Of a DNA stretch of 64,000 nt, positions 2,751-25,498 are shown in pieces (position 1 is the stretch's first letter; the number at the start of each line of letters is the position of its first letter). The position numbers and the translations under genes were made by a program. Under the pieces are notes generated by a model that saw only the letters and a list, made by a program, of their open reading frames with translations, ran no database searches and was not told the origin of the DNA. Source of the DNA: Gracilinanus agilis (taxonomy: Eukaryota); NCBI RefSeq assembly GCF_016433145.1, contig NC_058131.1, forward strand, positions 669,461,418 through 669,525,417, read 5' to 3'.

Positions 2751-2911
2751 ATGTCTGGGGAAAAGGTCCCCCCCAAAGAGATCAAAGCTGAGACGGATAA
2801 TTCAGATGTTTCCTGCCCTAGTGTCTCAGACCTGCAACAGCTCCTGCAAACAGGGAAGGTCTCCTGTAACCATGTGGATGAAGTCTGGCCTAACCTCTTC
2901 ATAGGAGATGC
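2751..2911 (+). CDS. DUSP13A: DUSP13A coding exon 1 (ends phase 2)
   Basis: ATG at 2751; encodes ...[13 protein letters not shown]; donor GC|GTGAGT. Confidence 0.93.
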
Positions 2912-5600
2912 GTGAGTGATAGCTTTGGGGCAGGAGGAAACCTGTTCTATTAGAAGTCTTGACAGCAAGAAGTAGAAGGAGACATACTGTGTTTGTAATT
3001 AGAATTGGCATGACTCTGTAGGGGGAAGGGGAAGACAGTTCTTAGGCACAACCATAAGGTAAGATGGTGAAAGCACTCAGTATTCCTAAAGGGGAAAAAA
3101 AAATACTGGGCTTAGAAACTAGGAGTTTTGTGTAGATTCCAGAAATCTCCCCAGAAACTCAGAACTGGTGACAAGCATATGGCAAGGAAGGCTTGGGGAA
3201 CAGAAGATGGAGAGAATAACAGGGATGTGGGTGAAAGACAAGATATAGAGTTAGCCTGGGCAATGTCTTGGAGGTTCCAAGAACCTGCAGGTATGCCATC
3301 TCAACTTATCTTGGTCCATTCTCTCTCTCCTCTTGCTCAGAATGACAGGAGGATGTCAACTGGGTTTTAGGGAACCCCAAGTCTGCCCTTGTCCCTTGAA
3401 AATTTGGCTTGGGGAAAGTCCCAGACTGACCTTGTTTCTGACTGAACAATAAACCTCTTGAAGTATTTAATGATCCCAGGTTAGGTGGGATTAGTAGATA
3501 AATAAGTACCTTTTTTGTCTTAGAAGTCCTTTCCCAGGTAACTCAGCTCCTGGCTGGAATCTTCCTTTTGTATCCATCATAAAGTCTCTCCTTGATAGTC
3601 TAGTCCTGGACTCCTCATTTCCTAGTAGCCATTGTAAAACTAATCAATCATATCTCTCTGTCCTTGGTTCCCCAAAGAGTATATAAGACCTCTATGTTCT
3701 ATTATTCTTTGGAGAATCACTTTTGGTGGTGCATTCTCCCAGAGTCCTAGAACTTTGGCTCTGTGTGGTATTAAGCACTTGACTCTGTGTGGCAGCCAAA
3801 TATTGAGCACTGTCTCTTATCCTGTTTAAAGATTTGGTCTTGCTGGCTACTTTAGTGGTTCTGTGTTTTTGAGTTGACAGGGACCTGGGGGGCAAGCTAA
3901 AAGGTAACTTGTAGATAAGATTAGAATTGATTCTTCTTCCTCAGTACCTGTTCCCTAGTTTCTTCCAGAAACCCTGGGGATTTGTGCTCTTCTGCATTGC
4001 CAACCAAAACTTCCTTCCAGATGTTTCCCATCCCTATATCCATAAGGTAACCAGCCTGGATCGATCAATCTACCAGTCACCCTGTCTGTCATTGTCTTCC
4101 TCCAGGGCCACAGCAAACAATCGCTTTGAGCTGTGGAAACTAGGCATCACTCATGTGCTGAATGCAGCCCATGGGGGGCTCTACTGCCAGGGGGGACCTG
4201 ACTTCTATGGCAGCTCTGTGAGCTATCTGGGGGTACCTGCCTACGATCTCCCTGACTTCAACATCAGTGCCTACTTTTCTTCCTCTGCTGATTTTATCCA
4301 CAGTGCCCTCTGCACGCCTGGGGGTACGAAATGGGTTGGGAATGGGTGGACGAGCTCTTCATTCATCTCTGCTATGCCAGTCCATCTCAGAAATGGACCC
4401 TTCATTTTCCCCTTTCTCTTCAATTAGGACCCGCCTACAGGTCTCCCCTGCCTTCCTATGATAGCCTAGAATCACTAGTTTACTCCCTTCAACCAAGGAA
4501 TATCAGGTGTTAAGAAATCCCCAACTATGATGAGACTCAGTCTTCACCCCAGATGTCTCCAGGTCTCCATTTTTTCACCCTAAAATAATTTCCCCATGAG
4601 CAAGCTGGAGTGGGAGAAAGGAAAGAAGAAGGTCAATGAAGGAACCTGGAGAAGGCAAAAAGGCAACTATTGGAAAGAGTTGGGGACAGTCTCTGCTCCT
4701 TCTAGAGGAGGTCTCAGTAGGAAGGCTTTTTTAGATTGATATGCAACTCTAGATAAGTCATCACCATTTTTTGAGCTTGTTTCCTTATGTGTACAATGGG
4801 ACCAGAGATAATAATGGCTTACTTTTGTACTGCCCTTTATACTTCTGAAAGCCTTTTCACATAGCCCATATTCATAATTGTAATTGCAGGGCAAGCCAAG
4901 TTATTCTACCCTTTTCAGAGATATGGAAAATGAGAATCATCCAATAGGTGCCAACAATCATATGGGTGACCTTTCATAGAACTGGGACAAGAATCAACAC
5001 AGGACCTTCCAATACTTTTGTACTGTCACTGTAAAAATACACACACACACACACACACACATATAGGAAAACCAACCAGAGTCAGGAACCTTGGATCCAA
5101 GTTCTACCCCTAACATATTAGTTATATGGCCATCAAGGATTCACTTCAATTCTGTTTCCTTATCTATAAAATGGGGATGATGAAAATCCTTGTATTACCT
5201 GCCCCACAGGATTATTGTAGAGAAAGTACTCCACAAATGTCATATCACTGTAGAAATATGAGCTGTTATTGCTCCCAGGGGGAGGTTCCTAGAGTAGTGA
5301 TTGAGTTTCTAGTAAGAATGAGAGAGCTCTGCCTCCCCTCTAGAACCTGGACTCTTCTCACCCCCTATTTCCCTCTTTCTTATTCCTCCAGCTAAGGTCC
5401 TAGTGCACTGTGTGGTGGGGGTCAGCCGATCAGCCACTCTGGTCTTGGCTTACCTCATGTTAAGACAAAGGCTAACCCTGATGCAGGCTGTGAGTTCTGT
5501 GAAACAACACCGTTGGATCTTCCCCAACTCTGGTTTCCTCAAGCAGCTCTGCCAGCTGGACAAGCAACTTCAGGAGTCAGGAGCAACAGTGAAGGACTGA
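2751..5600 (+). CDS. DUSP13A: Dual-specificity phosphatase 13A (MDSP/BEDP), 195 aa; join(2751..2911,4106..4323,5392..5600)
   Basis: Spliced frame MSGEKVPP...[67 protein letters not shown].../[23 protein letters not shown]...QESGATVKD*. Closely matches the known MDSP sequence. GT-AG introns, in-frame TAA upstream (2733-2735), 588 nt total. Confidence 0.95.
4106..4323 (+). CDS. DUSP13A: DUSP13A coding exon 2 (218 nt, phase 2-1)
   Basis: Acceptor TTCCTCCAG|G; encodes [10 protein letters not shown]...PAYDLPDF (general-acid Asp); donor GGGG|GTACGA. Confidence 0.95.
5392..5600 (+). CDS. DUSP13A: DUSP13A coding exon 3 (catalytic HCVVGVSRS)
   Basis: Acceptor TTCCTCCAG|CT; HCxxGxxR at 5406-5429; TGA at 5598-5600. 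Confidence 0.95.
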
Positions 5601-6948
5601 GAGAGCAGCCCCTTATTACTTTCTGGCTTCTTCTATAAGACAACATCCTCACCATCATTCTGCCCTTCAAAAGAGGATAGGACAGCAAACAGAAGAATTA
5701 TCACCAGAAAGGAGATTTCTGCCTTGGCAAGGCTAGGGTTGGTTTGGGGTGGGGAGAATTAGGAGCACCTTCTGTCTTTTTGCCAAGATTGGTCTCTCAT
5801 CCAGAAGAGGTTAGTATGGCTCCTGGTCCTAGCTGCCTCAGGGAGCTTAGTGATTTGAATGTACCTACTCTTCCTTGCCAACATGGGGGAAGCAAGGACA
5901 GTGGAAAGATTCCCAATTCAAGTAAATCAAGAGAAGAGTTGAGACTCTTGGGGACAGGAAGATAAGGAATGTTTAGAGGTCTAAGGTCTACTGTCTCCCC
6001 AGTCCACTAATCCCTCAAATTTCTTGTTTCTCAGCCTGAGAACACCTACATACTAGCCACCCCACTCTGTAAGCTACTGGTTCTCCATTCCTACCTAAAG
6101 AACTAGATAGTATTTGGCGGGAGGAAGAAAGAAGAGAAGAAGGAAGAGAATACAAGATGATATAGATTGGGGTTGGGGGAGATCATGAGTGAAATATGTG
6201 TGTGGGTAGAAGGCAAGGATAATGAAACTTGTAAATTGCTCAACTTTGTTTGGGCCAGGTTCTTCTTCTTTTCCCTAAAGGCAGCAAAGGGGTTAGGTTG
6301 AGGAAAGGTCTGAGGGAACCACCTGCAAGGTCCCAATGGTCATCAAATTCTAACTGTAAACTCCACTCCCCACGCCTGCCCCCAACCTTCTATCAAATCA
6401 TACCCAATACCCATCAAAACTAAGGTTTATCATCCAATCCCAGATTCCCTAACACCATTTTGTCTACCCTCTAACCTGCCAACAATGCCTTGGACACCCA
6501 TGCTAGAAGATGTAAGGGTGGGGGGGGGGGTGTTTTTGTATTGGAAAAGAGGTAGGACTATGTCTAGACTTCCCACATTGGAGGAGCAAGACTGATGTTA
6601 GTACTTCTGAGGCCTTCTTCCCTCCTATTCTTCTTCCTCCATTGTGTCCCTCTACCTAAGATTTCTGGCTTCAAACATATCTCCACATACTTCTCCAGGC
6701 ACATCAGGTTTTTCCCTCTCTCTTTCCCTTTCTTTCCAACAACCTCCAGATCTCACTCTTCTACTCCTCCCACCCCACTCTTGACCGCCCCACTCATGGC
6801 ACACATTCAGAGGAAACTCAGGCTCTGGCTCTGTGGGCAGGACTTTCAGGTTAAATTGTCTACTATCTCAGGTACTCTCTCAGAAATGGAGAGAAAGGAA
6901 GCTACACCTTATGAAATAACTACCTCAGGGTTTGATGAGCCTGTCTTT

Positions 6949-6954
6949 AATAAA
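6949..6954 (+). terminator. First canonical AATAAA after DUSP13A stop (candidate poly(A) signal; a second at 7348-7353)
   Basis: Hexamer seen; use as the actual site is inference. Confidence 0.4.
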
Positions 6955-7843
6955 TATCCAAGCTTCTCTAAACCAGAGAATAGTAGACTTTCTTGAGGTC
7001 ATCCTTTATAGCCAAACTCCTTTTCAATGTCAGATTACTTCTAGCCTAGACCAGGAGAGTCTCTCCTATTTTGAGATCTCTAGGAAAGGACATGTCTCAT
7101 ATTCCCTTTGGTCATTAAGTTTATCCTTAAGTCTATTCTGAGTCTCTCCTGTTGTCATTTAAATGCATAGCTTCTTGTTCGGTGTATAGGTGTATAATGT
7201 GTATAATAGAAACAGAAAATGGCCCATATCCCTGCTCCCTCTGAAACAGAAAGAAATTATTCTGTTACTCCTAATTGCCATTCTTCCTAAGTCTTTCCAC
7301 AGACCTTAGTGATGAACTCTGGGGTTTTCTTCCATCTCCAACTGCTAAATAAAAAGGGGATAGACTGTTTTAAGGTTCAGAGATCCAGTGACTGCAGCAG
7401 ACTCTAAATAGATCCATAGGGTAGCAGAGGTGGAGAAAGGGAAAGTTTTAAATAAGAAACAAATAGACTGTTCTTCCTGGAGGGACTATGAACTGCCATA
7501 TAGGTGACACCAGAGAGGCAGAATGGGGTGCTGGAATTAAAATCTGGAAAAGCTGGGTTTGAATTCTGCTTAGACATTTATTAGCTGTAGGCTTTTGGTC
7601 AAGTCAGTGAACTTTGCATCTTAGTTTCCTCATCTATAAACTGAAAGGGTTAAACCTGATGACCTCTAAGGTCCCTTCTACTTCTAAATGGATGATCCCT
7701 ATGAATTAGGGAACAAACTCTTTTTTGTCCAAGTAGTAGTTATTAAAGCCGGAATCTTAAACTTCCCTGGCCTTAATGAATCCTTAAATATCTTTATATT
7801 TTTATTATATCTAGGTGGTCATTGAACACCTAGAAAAGGGAAT

Positions 7844-8080
7844 TCTTCTGTTCAGTTGTTTCCAACTTTCTATGACCCCATTTAGAATTTTCTTAGCAAA
7901 GATGCTAGAGCGTTTTGCCATTTCCTTTTCCAGATCACTTTATATATGAGGAAACTGAGGCAAACAGAGTTAAGTGACTTGCTCTGAATCACAGGGAGCT
8001 AGTAAGTATCCAAAGTTGGATTTGAACTTAAGTCTTCCTGATTTCAGGGCCAGTACTCTATCCCTTGTGCCACCTAGCTG
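7844..8080 (-). mobile_element. MAR1-like marsupial SINE
   Basis: GACCCCATTT...TTAGCAAAGAT...GCCATTTCCTT, GAGGAAACTGAGGCAAACAGAGTTAAGTGACTTG motifs. Confidence 0.75.
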
Positions 8081-8119
8081 TCCTCACAAAGGGAACAGAT
8101 GATTATAAAAAGCCAGAGT

Positions 8120-8835
8120 AGCTTTGTCAAGAACAGGTCAGGCTAGACTAACCTCATTTCCTCTTTTGACAAGATTATTAAACTTGTACTTGAGGGGAAT
8201 TCTGTGGGAACAGCTTATCTTGATTTTAGCAAAGCTTTTGATAACATATCTCCTACTATTTTTATGGAGAAGACAAAGAGATATGGATTAGCTGATAAAA
8301 TAGATTGCTTCACAATGTTGGATGGCTGGATTCAAAGAATAGCTATTATAGTTGAATGTCAACTTGACAAGAAGCCTCTATAGTACCCGAGGGATGTATA
8401 CTTGGCCTCAGACTTTTAATATTTTTTTTAACAATGATTCACATCTGTAAAGGCTCACCAAATTTGCTGAAAACACAAAACTGAGAAAAATAGCCAACAT
8501 ACTGACTCAATCAACTGATGACTCAGAATTTTGCTGAATCTAAAAAGATGAAATTCAATCACAGACATTTCTTAGCTGCCTGACCCCTGGGCAAGGCATT
8601 TAACCCCAATGGCCCTTATCCCTCTTCTGCATTGGAACTAATACTTAGTATTGATTGCAAGACTGAGGGTAAGGGAAAGAAAAGGAAAAAAGAAAAAGGA
8701 AGAATTTCAGTCATGGGACAAGTCTCTCCTTTGGACACAAAGTGTCAACTTCACAAGTACAAAATGGGAGAGGCAAAGTTAAACAGTACTTGTTTTGAGA
8801 AAGATCTAGGGGTTTTAGTAGATGTGTAAACTCGA
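8120..8835 (+). mobile_element. L3/CR1 LINE reverse-transcriptase fragment (5' part, degenerate)
   Basis: From 8123 translates FVKNRSG*TNLISSFDKIIKLVLEGNSVGTAYLDFSKAFD, the CR1 RT signature. Confidence 0.85.
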
Positions 8836-8840
8836 TAGTG

Positions 8841-9598
8841 TGTGAAGTGGAAATTGAGGGGACTTTGAAAATATCAAAGTACACCTTCTTAAATCACTAT
8901 TTAAAAATATGACCAGGGAAATACATCACTTAAAATATAATGCTTTATTGAGAGAGAACTAGAGAAATGGGGGGGATTGTCTCAAGTCACTGACCCAAGA
9001 CAGATCACCCTAACCCCTAAAGATTTACAGAGAAAACGCAGGGAACTGTGTCAAGTCATTAACCCAAGACAACTACCTAAAAATTCACCGGAAAATCCCT
9101 TATTTATAGGAGAATCCAGATGTAACCAAGCCTCCCAGAAGGGATTATAACATTTTTGCAATGGTTGGAGACAGACTGTTGAATATTACAATGGACACAT
9201 TGGAGCTAATTAACATCTTCAAGAAATTGGGGAGTAGCTTTATAGTGGGCACATTCAAGCATTTTAGCATTTGAAAGAAATGATCAGGAAGTTGGAGACC
9301 AATAGAGAATTCCCGGATGGGACTGGATTGTCTGAGAGGAGCTGATGTCAAGTCTTTGGGCTTGACCATCTGGTAGAAGCCTCCAATATAATGGAAGAGA
9401 CTTCTACACAAAAGGATACTAGGAGATTGGTACTAAAGACTTGATCTTTGGGTACTTTCAGGATCAAAGACCGGAATCAGCCTAGGACAAATTCCCTTAA
9501 GGCTGGAAAACCTTTGTAAGGATGGAGGTAGGGTCTTGAAGGAAGAAATGGATAGATATTAATAACTTGAGAATAACACACTAATATCTCATTGCACA
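8841..9598 (-). mobile_element. Probable solo LTR inserted in the L3 element
   Basis: TG...CA-type ends; on the - strand TATAAATA (9101-9108) followed by AATAAA (8944-8949); interrupts otherwise collinear L3 sequence. No clear TSD found, so ends are approximate. Confidence 0.6.
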
Positions 9599-9614
9599 CA
9601 ATTGGAAAGAGCAG

Positions 9615-10100
9615 TGTGATGCAGCAACAAAGAAAACTAATATCATTCTGGGTTGCAGTAAGAGGGGAACAGTTTCCAGAAATAAGGAGAGAATAGTCTT
9701 CCATACTTTCTTCTTATCAGTCCTCATCTGATATATGTGTTCAATTCTGAATGCAAACCTGAGGAAGAATGTTGAAAAGTTAGTGTCGGAGAGGGCAATG
9801 GTGGTGACCAAGTGTGGCAAAAAACCATGAATCTGTGTCATATGAGGTTTGGTTAGAGGAACTAGAGAGGGATGTTTGGCCTGGAGAAGAGAAGACTTTA
9901 GGAAGAACATGATTTGTGCTTTCAAATATTTGAAGGCCTGTTTTGTGAAGGATCCTGAAGGACAAGAAGCCAATTGAGGATTGATGTCAGGAACTTCCAA
10001 ACAATAAAAACTGTCCCAGACTGGAATGGGTCATTTCTAAGGGTAGTAGGCTTTCCCTCCCTGTAGGTCTTCTTCAAGTGCAGGCCAGATGACTATTTGG
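9615..10100 (+). mobile_element. L3/CR1 LINE 3' ORF2 fragment
   Basis: CAGTGTGATGCAGCA...TGTGTTCAATTCTG...GGCCTGGAGAAGAGAAGACT...TTCAAATATTTGAAGG corresponds to the CR1 C-terminal (LEKRRL...FKYLKG) region. Confidence 0.8.
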
Positions 10101-11267
10101 TCAAATTTTAGTCCAGATTACTTTCATGTTGGGGTTGTACCAGATGACTAATGAGGTCCCTTCTAAGTCTCAACTTCTGTAGTTCTATGTCCTAAGTCTG
10201 CTTCTTGAGGAAGTCATTCAGACTTAGATTAAATCTCTGGGAATGACTTTCCTTAGAGGTCATCAAATTCAATTCCTTTTTCAGAAAAGGGAACTAAGGC
10301 CCAAATTAGTCAAATGACTTGCCCCATGTCACAGCTAGTCAGCAGCAAAGCAAGATCCATATTTCTTGATTCCTAGTACAATCCTCTTTCCACTTTATTA
10401 CGTGCTGGGTTCCTCTCTTCTGTAAAATGAGCTAGCAACTGACCTTTCCCCAACTGTGTGGGAGGTCAATCAATTAATCAAACAAGCAGGAAACTCAGGA
10501 AGTAGAGGCTAAAAACCTGAAATTGTTCCCTGGAGAATTCTAACAGACCAATGCTAGGGCTCTCCCTTGGGCTATGACTTAATCCTGTTGTGGACTTAGG
10601 TAAAAAGAGCCAAGATGACTCAACTAAACGATAAGTGGTTATGGCACAACATTATCTTTTTTTTTTTTTTTTTAATTTTTTCCTCACCCCCAAAAAAGGC
10701 TACCAGAGGTAGATGACCTACAAATAGACTTTTGCTTTTATATCATGTTCATTTCTGAACAGGCCCCTACCCTTTTTTTTCTACCTTTGTAACAACAACA
10801 ATTACAACACAGAGTTCAACAAATCAATATAACAACTGTGATTGACAGCATAAAGCAACATTCAACATCCACAATGTTCAACTTCTTCTGTGAAAGGAAG
10901 TTGTTTAACCTTATTTTTCCCATTGTTCCTATTGAAGACTCAAGATATGAAGGGAGTGCTTCTCAGGAAGCTAAATCTTTGGGTCCCTTGGTGGGGAATG
11001 GGTCAGGGGCTACCATCCAACAACCTGTAGGTGAGATCTTTAAGAAAACCTAGGCTTTCCCCCCAATATTCCTCCCCTTGGCACCACCCACACCCTCATA
11101 TAAGTAGGTTAGTATTTCCCTAGAGAAAGTATTTCCCCATTAACTTTCTCTTGCTGATTCTACTTCTTCTGCACTTATTTCCTACCACCTGTCATCTTTT
11201 ATTGTTCTCTGTCTTCAGGGTTCCTTTGGACTGCACCCTGAGTAGAGTGCTCTCCAGTGGGGGTCAA

Positions 11268-11401
11268 ATGGATGGGAAGATGTTTCACAAGATCAGATAT
11301 AAGACACCAGAGTTGAATGACCTGCAGCGACTCCTCTTGACTCAAAGTGGGTCTCGGAATCATATGGACGAAGTCTGGCCTAACATCTACGTGGGAGATT
11401 T
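11268..11401 (+). CDS. Third paralog coding exon 1 (exon probably starts at acceptor 11219)
   Basis: [11 protein letters not shown] motif; donor TT|GTAAGA at 11402. Confidence 0.88.
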
Positions 11402-12807
11402 GTAAGATCTCTCTGCCAATCATTCTCCCTCAGTCTTTCCTGCCTGCCCTGCCTGATTTCCTATCCTGCCCCAAATCGCACATCCTAGAACCCAGCTTGG
11501 GGGTTTGAACCCCAGAGGAATCTGGGGCTTCTCCTGGAGAGGCCATAGAGGAGGGAATATTAAACTAGCTGGGTGTTTCTACCCATTCTGGTCCCTAGAG
11601 AAGGAGCTGTGGCACCGCAGAACCAGAGATGGATTGTAGGGGTGGGGACTAGAGTTGGGTTCTGGCTTAGAATTGAGATTGGGTTTAGGGAAGTATGTTT
11701 GGGTTTTGGTTAAGATTAGGAGGTCATTTCAATTTAGCATGTGGTTTAGGGTAAGAGTTAGGGTTGGGGATTATTGAGGTTGAGGCTGAGTCAGGCTCCC
11801 AGTTATCAGATGCCCCTGGCCATCTGCCCTTGTAGCAATTTCCTGTCTCTTGGGTTTCTTCCCCACTACAGATGGGCTGCCAGGAATCTCAAAATACTAC
11901 AGAGCCTAAGAATCACTCACATCCTCAATGCTGCCCATGGTGGATTAGGCGTATCCACAGGACCAGGTTATTATCGTCACATACCTATGACCTACCTTGG
12001 GATAGAGGCTTTTGATGACTGTGCCTTTGACCTCAGTGTCTTTTTCCATGAGGCAGCAAACTTCATCCAGGGAGCACTAGAGACCCCAGAAGGTAAGAGG
12101 GAGGCAGGTGGCAGGGACTTTCTCTTTTGCCCAAGCCCTATAAGCACTGCACCCTACCCCATTCTCAGGGCTATGCAAAAATGAACAGAAGTGAGTCTGG
12201 AAGTCCAGTGCCCTGGGTCTAGGGGTTTGGTGCGATTTAATACCTATGGTTGCCCCCTGATTTTCTGTTGCATTGGTTGTAAGTTTCCAGCCTGTAAAAT
12301 GGACAGGAGACTCTTCTTTCATTGTCCTTTCCTTTATACCCACTTGGGACTGTTCTTGTGTCCCCAGTTCCATGGCATAATATATTGGATTTGGTGTCAG
12401 GAAGACCCAAGTTCAAATCCAGCCTTAGATACATCCTAGCTGTGTGACTGTGGACAAGTTACCTAATCTTTCTTGGCCTCAGTTCCTCATCTGTAAAATG
12501 AAACTTGGACTCGGTGGCCCTTGGGGTCCCTTCTACATCTAAATCCCTGATTTTATGATTCTTCCCAGGGAAGGTGCTTGTCCACTGTGCCATGGGGCTT
12601 AGTCGCTCTGCTACCCTGGTACTTGCCTTCCTGATGCTCCGGAAGCATCTGACCTTGGTGGAAGCCTTGAAGACAGTAAGTGTCCATCGAAACATCTGCC
12701 CCAATCTGGGGTTCCTCTCTCAGCTGCGTAACTTGGACCTCCAACTTAGCCAGGAACAACATAATAGGGACAGGGAGAGTCTGATGGCACCTACCACTCT
12801 GCACTGA
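11268..12807 (+). CDS. Unnamed third DUSP13/DUSP29-family phosphatase, 197 aa; join(11268..11401,11872..12092,12569..12807)
   Basis: [197 protein letters not shown]. 594 nt, no stops or frameshifts, canonical GT-AG sites, catalytic Cys/Arg and general-acid Asp intact. The start codon choice (11268 vs the next Met or an upstream exon) is uncertain. Confidence 0.9.
11872..12092 (+). CDS. Third paralog coding exon 2 (221 nt, phase 2-1)
   Basis: Acceptor CCCACTACAG|A; [10 protein letters not shown]; general-acid Asp codon 12014-12016; donor GAAG|GTAAGA. Confidence 0.92.
12371..12560 (+). mobile_element. MIR/MAR-type SINE in intron 2 of the third paralog, abutting the 3' splice site
   Basis: GAAGACCCAAGTTCAAATCC, CTAGCTGTGTGAC, CTCAGTTCCTCATCTGTAAAATG, GTCCCTTCTACATCTAAATCC...ATGATTC tail. 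Confidence 0.75.
12569..12807 (+). CDS. Third paralog coding exon 3 (catalytic HCAMGLSRS)
   Basis: Acceptor TTCTTCCCAG|GG; motif at 12583-12609; TGA at 12805-12807. Confidence 0.92.
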
Positions 12808-12808
12808 A

Positions 12809-12814
12809 AATAAA
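12809..12814 (+). terminator. AATAAA poly(A) signal immediately after the third paralog stop
   Basis: TGAAAATAAA seen at 12805-12814. Confidence 0.6.
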
Positions 12815-14299
12815 ATGGTCATTTAAAAAAATAGCTGCAGCTTTATTGACATTTCACTAAGTTCAAAGGTTCTGCCAATGGTGTTATCCTCTGTTAAGAA
12901 AGGATCAGAAGGTTGAGGATCTAGAAGCCATGAGTTTGTCCTCTCAAGTCAGTATCTGTCATATCAAGACTGTGCCTGTGAAGACTGAAATTTTCAGAGA
13001 TCAAGATGGCAGAGAGACACCATGAAGTGGAGACAGGATAGAAGAACTTGGTCAAGGTTTCCTGGGGCTTTTCCAAAGGTCCTAATATGGACTGGAGATG
13101 CGAAGAGCTCTGAGCAAATTCAGGTCACAAATTGATTTCTGTTCAGGGTCTAGGAAATATGCAGTGGTCATTCCTCTGTATACCCTTCCCAACAGTCGCT
13201 TTTCTGAACTCTCTAGGCTCCAAATAGTGCCTATCCTCTACCTGGAACTAATTATGGGCTTTTAAAATAGATTCTTACAGAAAAGACATCTAATTTCTTC
13301 AAACTATAGGCCAAGGAACTGGACTTCATTTCCAGGCAAAATCCCCACAGGTTCCTTGTTACTCTGTCCATTGGTCTGGCATCCTGGGGGGTAAACTCTG
13401 TCAACTCTGTGAAGAGGGATGGACATGGAATACGTATTTATAGAGTCCCTCCTATGGACTAGGCACTGTGCTAAGTGCTTAAAAAATATCTCATTTGAAG
13501 AGCATTTGAACTTCTCTTTCTATTCCTTTCATCGATTTGTTCCTTCCCCACCTTTCTTTCTGGAATAGCCAAGGCTAGTGGGGATGGGGGAAAAGAGAGG
13601 ACTTGTAAGAGTCCAGGAATGGGCTAGATATCTGAGTGGTCAAGAACAGGTGGCCATGGGCAACTAGATGGCTTAGTAGATATAGACTAGAGACAAAAGG
13701 TCCTAGGTTTAAATCTGGCTTCTGATAGCTCCAAGCTGAGCAAGTCGCTTAACCCCATTTGCCTAGCCTTTATCTTCTTTTGCCTTGCAACTAATACTTT
13801 TTATTGATTCTATTAAAAAATAAACAAACAGGTGGCCTATTGGCAAGCCCAGTTTGCCTTCCCTTCTCTCTCATGCCTCCCATCCTAAGTGGGGCAAGAC
13901 CATAATCATGGGCCTTCTCCCATTTTGCCTGCTACCCCTTATTTCTACATAATAATAAAGGCTTGAAAAGAATACCCACACATTTTTAAATCCTCTTGGC
14001 CAAGGATTAGTCTCCTACAGCTTTCCCTGGCTCTTCCTCCCACTTCCCAACAATCATTGACACATACCATATATATAGCCCAGGCTATGACTGGACCAGC
14101 CATCTCCTTAGCATGTGGAGTGCTGGTGTTGGGTCAGAGGGGGTGGAGGCAGGGGTCTGGTGCCAGGACTGCCAGACTAGGCTCAGTCTCGTGCTCTGCC
14201 ATGCCATCCCCTCGGCACCTTCCCCTCCTGGGAATGAACGGGACTGATGGCCCTGGGTAGGGTAAGAAGAGGAGGGCGGAAGGGGGGAAGCGGATCATG

Positions 14300-14428
14300 G
14301 TTTATAATTAAACACAAATTCAAAATAGAAGCAGCCTCAACAGAGCAGAGACAGGCAGTTGGGAACCTGCCTATCGGGAGACCGTAGCCAGTGCCTGGAA
14401 CCAGGCTAGGCCCTCTCCACAGGTGAGT
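14300..14428 (+). promoter_or_regulatory. Candidate TATA-like promoter and non-coding 5' exon ending in a consensus donor
   Basis: TTTATAATTAAA near 14300, E-box CAGTTG near 14357, CAG|GTGAGT at 14422/14423. Confidence 0.4.
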
Positions 14429-15502
14429 GTCACCCCCCTCCTCAGCCCATTCTCAGAATGATCAGAAGCCCTTTTGGGGCATAGGCTTGGGGGTGGCAGG
14501 GGCACACATGGGTGGTGGTAGCTGGGTGTGTGGGAAGAGTTAGAGCCATCTGAGCCACCCGGAGTCAGAGGGAGAGACAGACAGACAGGGAGTCAGAAAC
14601 AAAGAAAACTGACAGTCAAATGCAGAATTGTGGCCCTCCTCATCCCAGCCCAGACAAGACAACCCCCACCTGTGTATTTATAAGAGGTTGGTAAAAGAGT
14701 AATTAATTATACCTGATAAGTAACCTGAGAGTGTAGTAGAGTGGTTAGGGAGACGGTCTGGAGTGGGGGAAAACAAAGATCTATACACAGCTGGTTGTCT
14801 TTGTCATCCACATTTTATTTTATACATTTTAAAATATTATTCTGAAGAGTCCACGGGCTTCATCCGATCCTGGCAAAGGGGTCAAGCACGAGCGCACACA
14901 CAAGACAGTTAAGAATCCTCTGCATAGAAAAAATCTATAGTAAGAGATTATGGGTTCAAATCCCAACGCTGCCACTTACTGCCTTTACATCATTTCAATT
15001 CTCTGGGCCTTGGATTATTCATCCGTGAAATAAGGGGAGACGTTCACAGGCTACTGGCCGGAGAGCTGCCCTAAAACTCGAAGCACTCCAGATGCCTCTG
15101 AAGACTCTGAGTTAGAGAATTTTGCCAAAGAAATCCCCAATCCGAGCCCTTTTCCCTTCCGCCACTCAAAACCCAGGGACAAGACTGGCTGACCCCTAAG
15201 GTCCCTTCCACCTCTGAATCTACCATTTTATAATATGTGTGAGACTTGGATTGTGGTCCGGATACTTGTGAGCTGAGTGACCCTGGGAGAGTGCCTTGAC
15301 TCCTGAGTCTGCGTGGACAGAGTTAAGTCTGCTACTCACCCGCTCCTCTGTTCTGTTCTCAGTGTTTTGGGGGCCCAGAGAGGAAGGGAGTTTCTCAAAT
15401 CAAAGAAAGGTGGAGACACATAATGGGATTGAGGGAGGGCAGAAAAGACGGGGTCTTCCAGCTGCTTGGGGCCAGCCAGCTAAGCCTGGACGGAAGGCAG
15501 CA

Positions 15503-15504
<2 letters not shown>

Positions 15505-15566
<62 letters not shown>
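15505..15566. repeat. (TG)31 microsatellite
   Basis: Direct reading. Confidence 0.98.
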
Positions 15567-15570
<4 letters not shown>

Positions 15571-15710
15571 CCCTTTGGCAGGATCAGACAAAGCTTATGG
15601 ACTCTTCAGAATCATATTTTAAAGTGCATAAAATAAAATGTGTAGGATTACAAAGGAAACCAATTATATTAAGATATTTGTCAAACTATTAAAAAAAAAT
15701 TAGTTCACAA

Positions 15711-15850
15711 GGGGCAGCCAGGTAGCTCAGTGGACAGAGGCAGGCCTAGAGAGGGGAGGACCAGGGTTCAAATGTGGCCTCAGACAGTCCCTAGCTGTGT
15801 GACCCTGGGCAAGTCACTTAACCCTAATAACCTAGCCCTTACCACCCTTC
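15711..15850 (+). mobile_element. Opossum-type SINE whose tail runs into an AT-rich expansion
   Basis: GGGGCAGCCAGGTAGCTCAGTGG head, CTAGCTGTGTGACCCTGGGCAAGTCACTTAACCC core. Confidence 0.85.
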
Positions 15851-15852
15851 TG

Positions 15853-16635
15853 TATTAATATAGTATTAAAATATAATATAGTAAAATATAAATTCAATAT
15901 ATTAGAAATACACCATCATATTATAATACATTATTATATTAAATACATGAAAACATACAATAAAGAAATATAATTGTATAACATATTGCATATATTATTT
16001 ATTACAATATAAATTAATATAATATACTATTTATAAAATATATATTAATATATTAATACAAGTATGTAGGTTTATGATTCTTCCCAGGGAATACAAGTAT
16101 GTATTAATATAGTATTCATTCTAAGTATTAATATATAATATATTAAATATAAATTAAATATAATTATATCTAATATATTGAATATATTAGATATTACACA
16201 TATACTTTTATATATAAATATAAAACATTTATATTTATATACATATTATTTATATGTATATATAATAAAATTGTATGCCAATATAGTATTCATTCTAAGT
16301 ATTAATATATTAAATATACATTAAAATAAATATAATTATATAGAATATCTTGTGTATATTATGTTATACGTACTAATTGTATATAATATATTAATACAAT
16401 TGTGTATTAACATAGTGTTAATTCTAAATATTAATATGTGATATATTAAAATATATATTAAAATAAAGAAATATAACCACATAGAATACATTGTGTATGT
16501 TATATATTCTACATATAATTTTATATATTATTTATATAATATAGGAGTATAATTCTGTATTAATATAATATTAATTCTAAAACAAAGAGTGATGATGATG
16601 ATGATGATGGTGATGATGATAATAGTAATAATAAT
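15853..16635. repeat. ~730-bp extremely AT-rich degenerate repeat followed by (GAT)n/(AAT)n triplets
   Basis: Almost only A/T; recurring AATATAGTATTCATTCTAAGTATTAA-like units. Confidence 0.9.
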
Positions 16636-16639
16636 GGTA

Positions 16640-17850
16640 ATAACAATAATCATCCATCCTGCCAGGGAAGTTGCTAAATTAGTGGTTGTGCTGGTGGGTA
16701 CAATCGCTAAAAGGTCTTGGGGGGACTGAGATTGGGGCTTCTCCTCTACCTTCCTCGCAGTGGGGCTGCAGGGCCGGAGAATGGCCAAGGGAGGGCAGTC
16801 TTCCCCTAGATTTGATCCTGAGAGGCCAGAGAAAAAGATGGCCCAGGGAGAGCTGGGTGGGACCAGTCTCTCCATCAGAACTGCCCAGAGAAGGCAGAGA
16901 CTGCCAGCCTTTGGGGGGACCAAAGCTTCCTGCCCCGCAGCCTTAACTGGGTCAGAGTCAAGGATGAAAGGGCCAGCGGGCAGGGCCAGGCCCCCCACCC
17001 CCACCCCCGAGTGGCCGCTGGTTTGTTGCTGGTACTGGCTGTGACCTCCCCCTTCTCTCGGGCCAACACCCCCTCTCCGGGGCCCCTTTAAATGACATCA
17101 TCCCGGGGCTGCTTAACTCTGGCCTGCCCTGGGCCGGGGGCTGAGTCTCTCGGAGCCTTGAGCCCGCTTCAGGATGCTCCGGGCCACGCTGGGCTCCCCT
17201 TGGGGCAGGGCCAGCGCGGGGCCTCCCTTGGGCTCTCCCCCTCCCCCCAGGGGCTTCCAGGTGGAAGGGCTGGAATCCTAGCCGCTTCACAGCATCTGTG
17301 TTCTCAGAAGGAACCTCATCCCCCTGTTCCGATCCCTACTGTTGAGTCCAGCACTGCCCTGGCCCCCAGAGCCTCCAGACTCGAGCCCTAGACCATGTTC
17401 TAGGTAGGTGGGATTATATGGTTCTATAGACTCAAGCCCTGCACCATGTTCTAGGTAGAGGAGGTAAGACCCCCGTTACTGGAGAAGGGTTGGAGGCCTC
17501 CAGGATCAGGCAGCCCTCCGGTGGGCTTCGACTCCCACCCAGTTACAGCCTGGGACATCTGTCGCCCCACAGCCAGGGTTTCTGGGAGTTCAGCATTCTA
17601 GGTCAACAACCATTTCTGCCACCAACTGGCTGCGGGAGTTTGGGCAGGCCACTGAAGTTCTAGGAGTTTCCCTTCTCCCCCACGGCCCCTTTTTAAGCTG
17701 TGACAGTGGAAGAGCGCTCTCTCCCACGCGTGTCCCTTGCCTAGCGTCCCCCTCGGCGAGGTGGCCTGAGAAAGAAGGCGCCGCCTCCATCTTACACGGC
17801 CTAGCCGCGGTCCTCAGGATGGGAGGTGGAAGCCAGAGGGATACCAGGCC
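16640..17850. promoter_or_regulatory. Internal GC/CpG-rich island between the third paralog and DUSP13B
   Basis: Roughly 30+ CpGs in ~1.1 kb (approximate count by eye); CRE-like TGACATCA at ~17093; strong acceptor CTTCCTCGCAG| at 16760. Confidence 0.55.
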
Positions 17851-20108
17851 CTGATAGATGACCCCACCATTTTATAAGCTCCAACTTCCCAGGCATTTCC
17901 TCATACGGCTGGCTCTCCACATAACCCACCTTCCTGGACAAGACACAACCAGTGTCTCCATTTCCATGCCCACCAAGGCCCTGGAAACACGCTCTGTCAC
18001 CCCAAAATGATGTTTCTGGACACAGCTCAGAATGCAAAGGAGGAGAGGAGAAAAATTAAGGCTGTGGCTAACCTTTCCTCGGTCAGATGGGAAGGTTCAC
18101 GCCTATGAGAGGTGAGGGTCTCAATGGGGATTGAGGGGGGACGGGTCTATGTTCATTTTCACCAGAAATCCCAGGGGCAGCGTCAGCAACAGACCCCCGA
18201 TATTGGGAGAGGAACCCGAAGTGTCCAGGGGTTATGTTCAACCAGGTGAAAACTAGGGCATAGCTTGGGACATTATTATATCCTGGCTAGAGGGGGAAGT
18301 CACTTAAATTCCTAGATTCAGCTGCTTCAACCCCATGTGAGGGTCTCGAAAATATTACTGGTCCTCTCCTTACCTGGGAAAATGATGAGAAGAACTTGGA
18401 TCCCCTCACCTACCCCTTCCACCCAGGGCTAGGGATCCCCCTTCACACACTTGGCAAGTAATATATTTACTACATATTATAATAGAGCAAGCTTTTCAGG
18501 TTTAGTGAATTCTTCCAGCCTGGCCTATGCAATATTAGTTCTTGTTAAAATTTTGAAGTCACTTGGACAGTGTCTATATATATCCCTAAAAATAACAAAT
18601 ATCTCCTAATCCTATTACCTAAGAGGCTACAGCCTAACCCTCAGAACAAGAGGCTGTGGCCCATTGGTTGGTTATTGTCCTTCCTACTCAAAAAGGACCA
18701 AAATGACATCACTATGTTGATATAATGTGTCTGACTCTGGCTGAGCCCACCAATGTGAGCTCAGAAGGCTTTCCTACAAGTCAGGCACAAAAAGCCCGAA
18801 TGAATATTTGGCATAAAAGTTTCAAAGGGATGAAAGTCCACTTTCCTTGAATGGTAGATTTTTTTTAAAGTACTTTGAAGTTCAGTTAACAAGCAATCAA
18901 CTGAGGTCAGTATGTATTCCATAATAATAATAATAATAATAATAAATCATAGAATCACAGAATTTTCAAGAAGGGTTACATGTTTAACCCTAGTCCCCAG
19001 GGACCTGTGGGTCATGTTCAACCACTGAAATGAGGGGAAAACAACTCAACTTTAGGGCTAGTCCATTCCACTCAGACTTTCAGGACACTTGGAGAGAAGG
19101 AAATGGGTTAAGGGCAAGGGGGACTGAGGCCCCTTCTTACTTCCAAATGTCTGGTCCCTTTTGGGTTTTGTTGGAGAGTATGTTAGAGGAAAAATTACCA
19201 TTTCAATTTAATTCAGCAAAAATTAAGCACCTACTATGTGCCCAGGGTCCTGGAAAATCCAAAGACAAAAATTATCTTGTCCCTTGAAATCATTCTACTC
19301 TTCTAAACACTAGTAGGACTCTGAAACCATCATGTCCAGAGGAGGTTGGCTTGACCAGTTTAGGTGCCAGACAAGTATGTGGCTAAGTTCTGGTGGCCAA
19401 TGGGACACAGTAATGAAACCATAAGTGGCCTCAGTTGGGAAGCCTGATAGGTAGCAAGGGACTAGTCTGGGAGAAGAAAGAATGGAGATCCACCTTCCTA
19501 TGAAACACAAACAGATCTCTGAGGGGCAATGGATGACATAAACCCTGCAGGGGTCACTTATCCTCTCAGTCTCCAGGCTAAGCTGAGGCAAGAAAGCTGG
19601 GGAGGTAGATGGGGAAAATGCACAGCCCTCCTTCTGTCCTTGTAGACATCCTTAGCAGAATGACCTCTTCCTATATCCCAGGTAAGGCAGAGATGAGGGG
19701 AAAGAAGATGGTGTGGAATTACTGATAGTTACAGATGGAAGGGAATTTTTAAAGGTCACCTATCCCAACCCCTTTAGGTCTTCCCACCTCCCCATTCACT
19801 TTGTGGATATGAAAGCTAAGGCCCAGAGATGTTAAGTAACTTGCCAGAGGGATAATAGCCACAGCTATTCAGTGTTAGAGTTGAACTATAATCCAGACCC
19901 CATGTTGCATTTTGACTCTAGCCCTGAGATTCCTCCTCTGTAAAATGATGGTGTTAGTCTTGATGACCTCAAAGATCCCCTCCAGCTCCTTCCTGGAGGA
20001 GTTCTTGGGACATGATGATCTTCCCATTGTCAAGCCAGAACTATTTCCACTGGATCGTGTAGTGAAAGTCATCCACAGGTCACACAGCTCCTTGTTGGGC
20101 TGCCAGAG

Positions 20109-20345
20109 GGGATGGGGGATGAGGAAACAGAGTAATAATCCCTGAAGGTAGTGGGACCAATTCTCCAGTGGGATGGGGGATGAGGATGCAGAGTAGTAAT
20201 CCCTGAAGGTAGTGGGACCAATTCTCCAGTGGGATGGAGGATGAGGATGCAGAGTAGTAATGCCTGAAGGTAGTGGGACCAATTCTCCAGTGGGATGAGG
20301 ATGCAGAGTAGTAGTCCTTGAAGGTAGTGGGACCAATTTTCCAGT
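20109..20345. repeat. 61-bp minisatellite, 4 copies (last copy 54 bp)
   Basis: GGGATGGGGGATGAGGATGCAGAGTAGTAATCCCTGAAGGTAGTGGGACCAATTCTCCAGT starting at 20109, 20170, 20231 and 20292. Confidence 0.97.
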
Positions 20346-20700
20346 GGGAGATCCCCAACCCTGTCTCTGCAGATGCTGTGATCTCTCTTTGGCCTTTTTG
20401 ATCCTCTTCTTTCTATAGGCCCCAGAGCATCTCCCACCTTCCTTCCCATGGTTGATTCTATGAGAGGACAAGTCTCCTAGCACCTATTCTTTTACTGCTG
20501 AGAGAGACAGGTCTCTCTCTCTCTCTTATTAAAAACAAAACAAAACAAAAACCACTTATCTTTCCCCCCAGTGATGGGAGAGACAGCTCTTCCTGGATTC
20601 TGGGACTCATTCCTCCTCCCCACTTCCCTCTCACTTCCCCCCTCCCTCCCCCAGGGCCCGCACAAGGACAGCAATGGGATGCCCTCCCCTGTTTTCCAGG

Positions 20701-20888
20701 ATGGATTCACTGCAGAGACAGGACCTGCGGAGGCCCAAGATCCATGGGGCAACCCGAGTTAGCACCCAGAACCTCGCCCCCTACCAGACACCCACTTTGG
20801 CCTACCTGCAGCGCCTGCTGTGGATTCGAAGGGCCACCTCAATGAGCCACATCAATGAGGTCTGGCCCAACCTCTACCTGGGAGACGC
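20701..20888 (+). CDS. DUSP13B: DUSP13B coding exon 1 (acceptor CCAG|G ATG at 20700)
   Basis: MDSLQ start; donor GC|GTAAGC. Confidence 0.95.
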
Positions 20889-23800
20889 GTAAGCCCGCCT
20901 TCCCCAAATTCACTCTGATGGGAGGGAGATTCACATCTGAGGAAGCAAACAGGGATGGACTTGGGCTTCCTCAGGGAGGGCTTCTTCCTGAGGAAGAGTC
21001 TTAAGACTCAGCTCTGTAGTTATCTCTTCTTGGTAGGGGAGGAGAGAATGAGGGAAAACACCCAACTGGGTAAAGTGGGGCAGATGGAGGGCTCTCCAAG
21101 AAACCAACCAAAGCCCTAAGTACATCTCTCTCCTCAGGGCAAAGGGCTCCAGGCTCTGAAAGATCCATTTGGGTGAATTCTCTGGACTACTTTGTCCTGA
21201 CAGCCTCCCGACTATGGGGATGGGTCCCCAGGAGAAGAATTTGTCTGAATCCCAGGAACCCCATTGATGTCTGGGCTTGAGGGCTAGATAGATGACTTAA
21301 GTTAGGTGCTGGAGATACAGAGACAAAAAGGACCCCATTCCTATGTATAACTTGCATTCTACTATTCTACCAAACCTTGGTATGGTGGGTAGAGAGCTGG
21401 CCTTGGAGCCAGGGAGATTTGAATTCAAATCCTGCCTCTGACACATATTGACCAGGTAGGTGACCCTGAGCAAGTCACTTAATTCTGCACACCTTGAGGG
21501 ACTCTCTAAGACAAAGAGAAGGTGCTAATTTGGATAGCTAGGAGTTTCTTATCTTCTACCAATTAAATTACAGCTCTAATATCCCATTTTATAGACAGGG
21601 AAACTAAGTTAACTGGTTTACTTAAAGGTAGCTAGGTCGCACAATGAATAGATTGCTTTTCAGACCTGAATTCAAATCCAGTCTCAAGATAACTTACTAG
21701 CTGTGTGGCCTTGGGCAAATCACTTAACTTCTGTCTGCTTTAATTTCCTCAATTGTAAAATGGGGATAATAAGGACACCTCCCTCCCAAGGTCATTGGGA
21801 GGATTATTGAGATAAGGATTAAATGAGAGAACATTTTGTAAAGTGCTTAGTGCAATGCCTCTGATATAGAAGGTGCTTAATACATGCTCATTTTCTTCTC
21901 TTCTTTGTCCATGATCACACAGCCAGATCATTCAGAGCCAGGCTAAGAAGCCAGATCTCGTGTGTACAAATCCAGCACCCTGTCCTCTACACCTCCCCAA
22001 CTCTGAAGATGACTTGGCACTTCTCTCACCTTGCCAAGGCACCCCCTCATTGGCGTCTCTGGCCTCCTTCCCCACAGCCCATGCTAGGTGCTGACTGCCA
22101 GCAGGAACACTCCATGACTTTCCTTCCTTGTTCCTCTTCCAGATACGCAGCCCGGGATAAGAGCAAACTGTGCCAGCTGGGTGTCACCCACATTGTGAAT
22201 GTGGCTGCTGGCAGGTTCCACGTTGACACGGGCACCAAATTCTACCGAGGGATGCCCGTGGATTATTATGGGATTGAGGCTGATGACAATCCCTTCTTTG
22301 ACCTTAGCATTTACTTTCTGCCTGCAGCAAGATACATCAGAACAGCTCTCAGCAATCAAGGTGAGCTTCCTTCTCCTCCTTTCCTCCTACCCCTTTTCCT
22401 TTTCTGGTAGAGGAGATATATTTGAGAAGAGGAAGAGGATATGTGGAGGGAGGAAACCCAGAAGCCAACCAGCACAACCAACTCTCAAGCCCTGGACTTA
22501 GACCCTTCCAGAACAGTCAGTTGGGCTCCTTCTGAGATGGTCAGGCAAGTGGGCAAAACTCTCAGAAGATCATGCCCCTTTCTCCTCTCTTCTCCACTCC
22601 ATCCCAGAACAGAACCAATACTCTGTTATTCCCCATTTGGGAAGGTTTAGAGTGAAGATTAAAGACTCAGGGCTGAAAGGGGCCTCAAGGTAATCTGGTC
22701 AAATCCCTTCAATGTCCATCTGAAGAAACCAAAGCTCAGAGGACTTCAATGACTTGTGCAGCATCATACCAAGAGACAGTTTGATCTTAGGTCCTTTGAC
22801 TCCAAATCATTGTTCTTTGCATTATTACATCATGCTCCCCTTAGCCCCCTCATTTTTCATTTGGGGAAACTGAGACCCAAAGTCATTTTCCTAAGGTCAC
22901 ATAAATAGGATCATATATTCAAAGCTGGCAAAAACCTTAGAGGTCATCTAGTCCAACCTTCCTCATTTTATAGTTGAGGAAACTCTGGACTTTAAGTGAT
23001 TTACCAAAGGTCATAGTATCAGAGATGGGATCTGAACCCAGGTTTTCTGACTCAAAAGTCAGAACTTTTCCTACTGTACCACTCTTAAAAAAGTAAATTC
23101 CCTTTCCCAATGCAAATCAGCACTTGTTCTACATTTTACCTGTGTTAGAATGTAACTGGGATGGGAAGTCCTGGGTTCAAATATGGCCTCAGACATTTCA
23201 TAGTTGTGTAACCCTAAGCAAACCACTTAACCCTGTTTTGCCTAGCCCTTTGCCCTTCTATCTTAGAGTTGTTACTAAGACAGAAAGGTTGTTTTTTTTT
23301 TTTTTTTTTGTCTTTACTAGGGTCACTGAGGGAAAACTGGAGCTAGGCTAAAAGGTGTAAGTTATGACTTAGACTAGGTAGAACCTAGTCTGACCCTTAT
23401 ACCTAGACAGCAAATGGGGCTCCTGAGAAGTCTCTGGAAGAAAGCTTCATGAACAGTAGGTACTAGATGATGGGTGTGGGATTGTCATGGGTGGCCAGTT
23501 CCACATAGAGGAGTCTAGGATTTCTTGGTCTCAGCAGGGTCTTGCTCAACTCAAGGCTATGGTTGGGAGATACATACCTTGGGTATCTCTACAATCATCT
23601 ATGCACAGGAAACCATCAAGGACATCAAGGGTAAGTAAAAGAGAAAAGGGCTACCCAGAGATGAAAAGAGAGTGGAGCAGCCCTTTTTTGCAATGGGATG
23701 TGTTATGGTTATCTGTATTTGAACTTCAGGTTTGGGGTTGTTGTTTTAATGCCTGTTGTCAAGGCTGACTCCTTGGGAAACAGCATGGAGCAGTAGAACA

Positions 23801-25259
23801 ATCACTGCCTTTGGCATCAGAGGACATAAATTCTAATCTCACTTCTGCCACTTACTATTTTTTATTATATTTTAAAATTTAATTTAATATTTACCAATTG
23901 CACATAATAACAAATTTCCATACAAGTTTTCCTAAGTTATAGTTGAACTTATCTTCTTCCCTCTCTTCTTCCACCTCCTGGTGCTGGCAGGAGATTCATT
24001 CTAGGTTATACATGCATTATCATGAAAAAAATATTTCCATATTGTCCATTTTTGTAGGCCGCTTACTATTTGTGAGATCTCAAATGACTCACTTAACTTC
24101 TCAGGGTCTCAAATCTCCTCTGTAAGGTGAGGGCATTGCCCTAGATGACTTCTGGGGTGCCTTCTAGCTCTATAGGTTAAATACTGGGGTCAGGACAAAT
24201 TTCCATAGACTATGATATGCTGCTATTTTTTTTTTATTCCTCACCAGATAGACCCTAGATTTGAAGCTAAAAGGGAATCTAGAGGTCATTTAATCCAATT
24301 CACCCATTGTACAGTTAAGGAAACTCCCTGGGTCAGAGTGCAGTTGTCTGTGAGAGGACCTTCCTCTCCTTTCTTCCAAACTTCTACCTATCACTTTAAT
24401 TGATTCAAAGTTCCCTCTACTCTAGGGTTAACTCTTAAGTCCTAGTTTGCCTGAAGGAATGAGGCTTGTCCAGCAAGGGATGAACTCAAGATTGGGACAG
24501 ACTTCCATTGTGATGAAGTCTAGTCAGAACCCCTCTTCTCCTTAGATTCCTGTTGCTCAACCTTTGAAGATCCTTGTATCACTGGGGCTATTCACAGTAG
24601 TGCAGTCTAAATCAATTTCTGCTTCTCACTGGACACCAGAACCTTGGAGATGACCAGGATCGAACAAAGAGAAATCTTCCCAACTAGCAGGCACTGACCA
24701 GTCCTCTGAGGGTCTAAGTCTTCTCAAGCAGAAGAGCTCAGAGCTGACTTTCCCAGTTCCTTAGAGGTCTTAGAAGAAGAGGGATGGTGTCTTTCCTTAG
24801 ATGCTCTCTCTTATGATTTCCCCCTCTTGAATCTAGACAGGAAGAAGACTCTCCATGCAGTTCCTGACTGATATCAGGAGTTAGCTTTACATTTCAGTGC
24901 CCAGGAACAAAGCTCCAGTTACCCACCTTAGTGAACATCTTTGTTTTTAATCTTTAAAGGACCTGGTTAGGGTCAGATCCACTGAGTGTTCAGCTTTCTT
25001 AGTGGTCCTGTGGTTGTGGTTGTGATTGTGATCATATCTTTTGTTTCTCCCTGCAGGCCGTGTATTTGTGCACTGTGCCATGGGGGTCAGCCGGTCTGCC
25101 ACACTTGTCCTGGCTTACCTCATGATCTGTGAAAATATGACCCTGGTAGAGGCCATTCAGACTGTGCAGACCCACCGAGACATTTGCCCCAACTCAGGTT
25201 TCCTCAGGCAGCTCCAGGTCCTGGACAGTCGGCTGGGGCGGGACATGGGGAGACTCTGA
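20701..25259 (+). CDS. DUSP13B: Dual-specificity phosphatase 13B (TMDP/SKRP4), 202 aa; join(20701..20888,22143..22360,25057..25259)
   Basis: [16 protein letters not shown]...[43 protein letters not shown]...[11 protein letters not shown].../[67 protein letters not shown]. Closely matches known TMDP. 609 nt, GT-AG introns. Confidence 0.96.
22143..22360 (+). CDS. DUSP13B: DUSP13B coding exon 2 (218 nt, phase 2-1)
   Basis: Acceptor CTCTTCCAG|A; EADDN general-acid loop; donor CAAG|GTGAGC. Confidence 0.96.
25057..25259 (+). CDS. DUSP13B: DUSP13B coding exon 3 (HCAMGVSRS)
   Basis: Acceptor CTCCCTGCAG|GC; TGA at 25257-25259. Confidence 0.96.
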
Positions 25260-25492: not shown

Positions 25493-25498
25493 AATAAA
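25493..25498 (+). terminator. DUSP13B poly(A) signal AATAAA
   Basis: First AATAAA, ~235 nt after the stop. Confidence 0.7.

Follow-up and report, generated by a model that had tools for sequence, protein, structure and literature searches.

The stretch considered here (the window) comprises 64,000 nucleotides (nt) of the genome of the marsupial Gracilinanus agilis (NCBI RefSeq assembly GCF_016433145.1, contig NC_058131.1, positions 669,461,418 to 669,525,417). Its forward strand carries three phosphatase units of the DUSP13 family with three coding exons each (E1, E2 and E3), as read directly from the letters and checked by script. A sequence-only reading of this region had proposed that the exons of the three units could be mixed by a combinatorial splicing system. 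Our analysis indicates that the locus is very probably an ordinary tandem array of three complete phosphatase genes, all of them annotated already. These would be, in order, DUSP13A (MDSP), a third DUSP13-family gene seemingly absent from eutherians, and DUSP13B (TMDP).

Three phosphatase genes in tandem

The features of the three units are as follows (all on the forward strand, window coordinates).

2751-2911, +: E1 of unit 1 (assigned as DUSP13A/MDSP ortholog), 161 nt, from the ATG to a phase-2 donor gtgagt
4106-4323, +: E2 of unit 1, 218 nt, phase 2 to phase 1, containing the general-acid Asp loop
5392-5600, +: E3 of unit 1, P-loop HCVVGVSRS, stop codon 5598-5600, Pfam DSPc 66.5 bits
11219-11267, +: stretch preceding the ATG of unit 2, between the AG acceptor at 11217-11218 and the ATG at 11268, open in frame
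11268-11401, +: coding part of E1 of unit 2 (assigned as third DUSP13-family gene), phase-2 donor gtaaga
11872-12092, +: E2 of unit 2, 221 nt
12569-12807, +: E3 of unit 2, P-loop HCAMGLSRS, stop codon 12805-12807, Pfam DSPc 62.1 bits
20700-20888, +: E1 of unit 3 (assigned as DUSP13B/TMDP ortholog), acceptor AG 20698-20699, ATG at 20701, phase-2 donor
22143-22360, +: E2 of unit 3, 218 nt
25057-25259, +: E3 of unit 3, P-loop HCAMGVSRS, stop codon 25257-25259, Pfam DSPc 66.5 bits

Direct reading and the script agree with the exon coordinates, the phases (2, then 1) and the E2 lengths (218, 221 and 218 nt) given by the sequence-only reading, apart from two stop-codon ends that it had placed slightly off and that lie at 5600 and 12807. 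All internal introns are of the GT-AG type. In each unit E1 ends in phase 2 directly after an EVWPN-x-x-x-GD motif and E2 ends in phase 1, and the intron positions relative to the conserved motifs are the same in the three units. A tblastn search with the exon peptides found exactly three copies of the unit in the window. Their identity to each other ranges from 39 to 64% per exon.

Exons were searched singly against solved structures (phmmer, PDB) and full-length comparisons were made with database proteins. E2 of unit 1 scores 138 bits against PDB 5xjv (DUSP13 isoform A) and at most 64 bits against other chains. It is 89% identical to the corresponding exon of Manis 13A, while E1 is about 60% identical to eutherian 13A exon 1 and its coding sequence start agrees with RefSeq. 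The Monodelphis unit 1 protein falls inside the 13A clade of the tree described below (support 100/99). An assignment of unit 1 to DUSP29 was rejected, its E2 being clearly of 13A type. E2 of unit 3 scores 125 bits against PDB 2gwo/2pq5 (DUSP13, TMDP form) versus 73 bits to DUPD1, bearing out its earlier designation as DUSP13B, and E1 is 69-75% identical to eutherian 13B exon 1. On these matches, unit 1 is the DUSP13A (MDSP) ortholog and unit 3 the DUSP13B (TMDP) ortholog. E2 of unit 2 has no clear ortholog among the solved structures (DUPD1 60 bits, 13B 54 bits, 13A 50 bits), and the top PDB match of its E3 is 13B (83 bits).

The HCxxGxxRS P-loop with its catalytic Cys and Arg is kept in all three units. 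The general-acid Asp is present at the aligned A-x-D position of the three E2 translations, a residue which we take to be D92 of VHR. The DSPc profile (PF00782, cutoff 33.5 bits) matches each E3 with 62-66 bits. Judged by these motifs, the three units are VHR-like atypical dual-specificity phosphatases.

Each of the three units starts at an ATG and ends at a stop codon of its own. A scan for poly(A) signals placed an AATAAA immediately 3' of the unit 2 stop (12809-12814) and another at 25493, 234 nt 3' of the unit 3 stop. For unit 1 there are candidate signals only, at 6949 and 7348, some 1.3-1.7 kb beyond its stop. E3 is thus the terminal exon of its unit, and any chimera between units requires transcription past a poly(A) site.

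All five marsupial annotations of RefSeq type treat the units as three separate genes. Their longest products, in amino acids (aa), are given here for units 1, 2 and 3 respectively.

Gracilinanus agilis: 195, 197 and 211 aa
Monodelphis: 195, 204 and 244 aa
Koala: 195, 298 and 211 aa
Sminthopsis: 196, 238 and 211 aa
Sarcophilus: 196, 241 and 211 aa

No chimeric product is found among these longest products, annotation being an insensitive test of this point. A chain starting from 13A exon 1 is expected to begin at the 13A ATG and to reach about 256-267 aa, which fits none of them. The longer unit 2 products are extended at the N-terminus, either by unrelated exons located upstream or by an upstream open reading frame (ORF) that is not spliced. 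In the dasyurid unit 2 models, the upstream coding exons match nothing in the window.

Several of these models deserve separate mention. The koala isoform X1 (298 aa, XP_078006989.1; koala locus 10001-10220) is an ORF running unspliced through the polypyrimidine tract 5' of unit 2 E1 and is probably an annotation artefact. In Sarcophilus (locus 9259-10001) the first coding exon of the unit 2 isoform X1 lies 742 nt past the DUSP13A stop; it may be located inside the 3' untranslated region (UTR) of 13A, a hint of read-through. Both dasyurid loci (Sminthopsis 1-1974) carry upstream, on the opposite strand, a gene with SAM_1 and PAP2_C domains (SAMD8-like), a neighbour that presumably agrees with human synteny.

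The window also includes a run of 186 N at 34281-34466 (assembly gap or masked sequence). Some 350 nt 5' of DUSP13B exon 1, at 20109-20349, a 61-nt unit is repeated in tandem (4.1 copies, 88% matches). Intron 2 of unit 2 contains, at about 12380-12545, what appears by eye to be an interspersed repeat resembling a short interspersed nuclear element (SINE). This SINE-like repeat is the probable reason why 21 sequencing runs of another organism contain 13-15% of the sampled words. In the same search, none of the runs listed as containing the stretch was an RNA run.

Lineage and integrity of the middle gene

The exon translations of unit 2 are identical to a 197-aa Gracilinanus agilis protein annotated as "dual specificity protein phosphatase 13-like" (XP_044514982.1; P0160). 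The sequence-only reading took the third unit as an enlargement of the DUSP13 repertoire; it is not an unnoticed addition: the gene is annotated and its lineage is old. Orthologs of 193-204 aa with intact catalytic motifs are present in Monodelphis, Trichosurus, Notamacropus, Petaurus, koala, wombat, Macrotis, Antechinus, Sarcophilus and Sminthopsis, and E2 is 76-89% identical to that of other marsupial orthologs.

In a maximum-likelihood tree of 52 database proteins the marsupial unit 2 proteins (99/100) are sister to sauropsid "DUSP13-like" proteins (90/81). Eutherian 13B forms a separate group with a bird 13B fragment (99/87), and DUSP29 and 13A likewise lie outside the pair. Forcing unit 2 to group with eutherian 13B costs 24.7 log-likelihood units (approximately unbiased (AU) test, p = 0.016, for a group chosen once the tree was known). 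The tree and the AU test speak against unit 2 being a marsupial-specific copy of 13B, an assignment that was rejected. According to this topology, unit 2 is an old DUSP13-family lineage distinct from 13A, 13B and DUSP29. No eutherian member of the lineage occurs in the hit lists, where the eutherian matches to the unit 2 query are 13B isoforms, and a literature search for the lineage found no publication.

Fused bird gene models give information on gene order. In these, 13A exon 2 precedes a unit-2-like gene and 13B exon 2 precedes DUPD1, an exon order suggesting that the ancestral arrangement was 13A, unit 2, 13B, DUSP29. On this view, ancestral therians possessed a third DUSP13-family gene, located between MDSP and TMDP, which marsupials and sauropsids have kept and eutherians have seemingly lost.

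Unit 2 could instead be a decaying duplicate (a pseudogene), the array then being effectively the two-gene DUSP13 locus. The stem branch leading to the marsupial unit 2 proteins is long (0.76), some Ensembl wombat models are frameshifted, and no eutherian counterpart was found among the hits. Against this, at least nine marsupials from three orders have the 193-204-aa ORF intact, including the P-loop Cys and Arg and the general-acid Asp. E3 of Gracilinanus and Monodelphis are 96% identical, all splice sites of unit 2 are canonical and an AATAAA follows its stop codon. Decay of unit 2 is very unlikely.

Exon phases and exon-1 acceptors

Ten collinear E1-E2-E3 combinations can be drawn from the three units and, as the sequence-only reading had calculated, all are in frame. 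Computed by script, the junction codons are GCG, GCA or TTA (Ala or Leu) for all collinear E1/E2 pairs and GCT, GGG or GGC (Ala or Gly) for all collinear E2/E3 pairs. Chains of one exon 1 to another, noted here as donor^acceptor (2911^11219, 2911^20700 and 11401^20700), are also stop-free. The earlier statement that no junction creates a stop is true, though unavoidable: E1 ends in GC or TT and E2 ends in G, so that a stop codon at the junction is impossible. The missing stops are uninformative because no stop codon starts with G or reads TT+N or GC+N. Similarly, identical phases are expected by descent, since the units are paralogs with homologous intron positions. The phase compatibility is real but says nothing about splicing or exon mixing.

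The exon-1 acceptors had both been described as opening in phase 2. That of unit 3, ttttccAG/G-ATG (AG/G-ATG at 20698-20703), is identical in Gracilinanus, koala, Sminthopsis and Sarcophilus. Across these four marsupials the acceptor region shows 97% identity over 81 nt and 95% over 300 nt, and the 40 or so nt preceding the acceptor are identical. The acceptor fits the phase-2 donor of 13A exon 1, with GCG (Ala) as the junction codon of 2911^20700. The 5' flank of DUSP13B exon 1 (20600-20900) is far more conserved than that of unit 2 (about 80-85%) and might act as a promoter, a splice element or an element of the 5' UTR. The RefSeq DUSP13B model of 211 aa starts at an upstream in-frame ATG (20674), 5' of the acceptor AG at 20698-20699. 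Splicing into 20700 would make this ATG intronic, and the two readings are mutually exclusive within a transcript.

The situation differs for unit 2. The AG found at 11217-11218 is AA in koala, Sminthopsis and Sarcophilus, where an AG occurs one base later. In Sminthopsis an upstream exon that ends in phase 1 (locus 10001-10070, donor gtatga) is spliced to this later AG; were a phase-2 donor used there, the frame would be lost and a TGA reached within eight codons. Moreover, the dasyurid extension aligns to 11219-11267 in a frame other than that of the ATG. Because the acceptor is shifted in other marsupials and the dasyurid extension uses a different frame, the segment 11219-11267 is best read as 5' UTR, and its openness in phase 2 in G. 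agilis looks accidental. The description of the two acceptors thus holds for 20700 in four marsupials and for 11219 in G. agilis only, and the compatibility of chained junctions is not conserved across species at unit 2.

Possible splicing between units

The locus is, as had been recognized, the counterpart of the eutherian MDSP/TMDP complex locus. As given in a later article (PMC11274236, after Chen et al. 2004, J Biol Chem 279:41404), eutherian exons 1-3 encode MDSP (DUSP13A) and exons 7-9 encode TMDP (DUSP13B). The same text states that MDSP mRNA carries downstream exons as 3' UTR, that TMDP-L2 starts in exon 1 and that TMDP-L1 arises from an intronic promoter (PMC11274236). In both loci 13A lies upstream of 13B on the same strand, the units have three coding exons and an acceptor is located 1 nt before the 13B ATG. 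A SAMD8-like neighbour upstream on the opposite strand is a further likeness, in the dasyurid loci. The loci differ in their middle part, where marsupials have an intact third gene and eutherians have the non-phosphatase exons 4-6. Shared transcripts are documented in mouse and human. The eutherian exon preceding the 13B ATG has no match in the window.

The inter-unit products seen among the retrieved family proteins fall into a few types. A eutherian isoform of 248 aa consists of exactly 13A exon 1, one Ala and the complete 13B protein (P0407 from pig, P0461 from Mus spicilegus, P0413 from gelada). It corresponds to TMDP-L2 as described in PMC11274236, and the chain 2911^20700 pointed out by the sequence-only reading is its equivalent, although TMDP-L2 is known from eutherians only and is in no marsupial model. 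Whole-gene fusion models exist in Manis pentadactyla (DUSP13 X5, 390 aa) and Danio rerio (DUSP13B X1, 369 aa). Like the chains considered here they join adjacent tandem DUSP13 units by in-frame read-through, but these computational models concatenate whole domains and exchange no exon modules. Other inter-unit products contain 13A exons 1 and 2 followed by frameshifted tails. Among about 500 retrieved family proteins, none carries a swap of E1, E2 or E3 modules.

These observations do not support the regulated system proposed earlier, in which any collinear E1-E2-E3 choice would be made and up to ten enzymes with mixed modules produced; we give it almost no credence. Only two points favour it: all combinations are in frame, and transcription of the homologous eutherian locus is complex (PMC11274236). 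The phases are inherited, however, and each E3 is terminal, with its stop codon and, in units 2 and 3, an AATAAA close behind. The units share no constant exon, five annotations treat them as separate genes and no protein list contains a module-swap protein. The phase of the unit 2 exon-1 acceptor varies between marsupial orders, and with 39-64% identity per exon a swap would combine mismatched halves of the catalytic fold. Clustered protocadherins, UGT1A and insect Dscam1 are paralogous exon arrays with shared constant downstream exons, their variable exons lacking a stop or poly(A) site of their own. The present array resembles them in having paralogous exons with matching phases. It differs in that each of its units forms a complete gene, terminal exon included, and no shared exon was found.

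A more limited form of inter-unit splicing is possible, at less than even chances. Transcripts of DUSP13A or unit 2 would sometimes pass their poly(A) site and splice into 20700, giving a TMDP-L2-like protein with two exon-1 modules as well as non-productive forms. The exact composition of the eutherian 248-aa isoform (TMDP-L2 in PMC11274236), the same GCG (Ala) junction codon in the window and the acceptor and flank shared by four marsupials (97% over 81 nt) all agree with this. So does the Monodelphis 13B product of 244 aa, which begins at an exon between units 2 and 3 and implies that upstream exons use the acceptor. On the other side, a chain from 13A exon 1 is present in none of the five marsupial annotations, the conserved flank might just as well represent a promoter or a 5' UTR element, and even in eutherians the TMDP-L2 protein was not detected in muscle (PMC11274236).

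The reading as an ordinary tandem array accommodates such products without a dedicated system. An ancestral gene with phases 2 then 1 would have been duplicated in tandem, leaving three paralogs with the same inherited phases. Splicing between units would be limited to occasional read-through products of the eutherian DUSP13 kind, the likeliest being 13A exon 1 joined to 13B exon 1 in a TMDP-L2-like form. A regulated system making ten enzymes is not expected at such a locus. Several points weigh against the reading of three independent genes. The perfect conservation of the 20700 acceptor fits its use by upstream exons, and eutherian 13A transcripts that continue into 13B exons, as reported in PMC11274236, are a precedent for read-through here. 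The annotations give only the longest product per gene, so that chimeras of equal length within one model are invisible, and the G. agilis annotation may rest on little RNA. Finally, in an older Monodelphis annotation "DUSP13 isoform X1" stands for the product of unit 2 and "isoform X2" for that of unit 1, a naming that could indicate that the two units had at one time been treated as a single gene.

A further possibility concerns the leader exon of eutherian TMDP-L1. A profile of this leader (14 distinct sequences; proteins such as P0264, P0416 and P0417) was compared with 2195 six-frame pieces of the window. The best match is a piece covering E3 of unit 2 (12559-12804, E = 0.01), followed by E3 of unit 3 (E = 0.084). 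The hhalign P value of the leader is lowest for the unit 2 clade (6.9e-5, probability 63%), compared with 1.3e-3 for 13B and 0.045 for 13A. In all three comparisons the leader aligns in the same register, over the P-loop and the helix that follows it. Of 5000 shuffled versions of the unit 2 piece, none reached the real score. This resemblance suggests that the hydrophobic TMDP-L1 leader may be a fossil of the unit 2 catalytic exon, kept in eutherians from the lost third gene. The fossil would still be spliced onto DUSP13B exon 1 and, if this is true, the splice from unit 2 to 13B would be older than the loss of unit 2. Inter-unit splicing would then be real and old, and marsupials might make in-frame chimeric phosphatases that incorporate parts of the third gene, such as unit 2 exons spliced to those of DUSP13B; we consider this last scenario very unlikely.

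Equal exon phases are thus what is expected in tandem paralogs, RefSeq already contains the three genes, and the only chain that has a precedent is a known eutherian isoform. Chimeric splicing, were it true, would be a rare vertebrate case of domain-half swapping between paralogous enzymes; nothing here points that way. The retention of the third gene and the possible origin of the TMDP-L1 leader are of modest evolutionary interest. If this origin is correct, the signal-peptide-like leader of the p53-induced, secreted TMDP-L1 would be a recycled piece of a lost gene.

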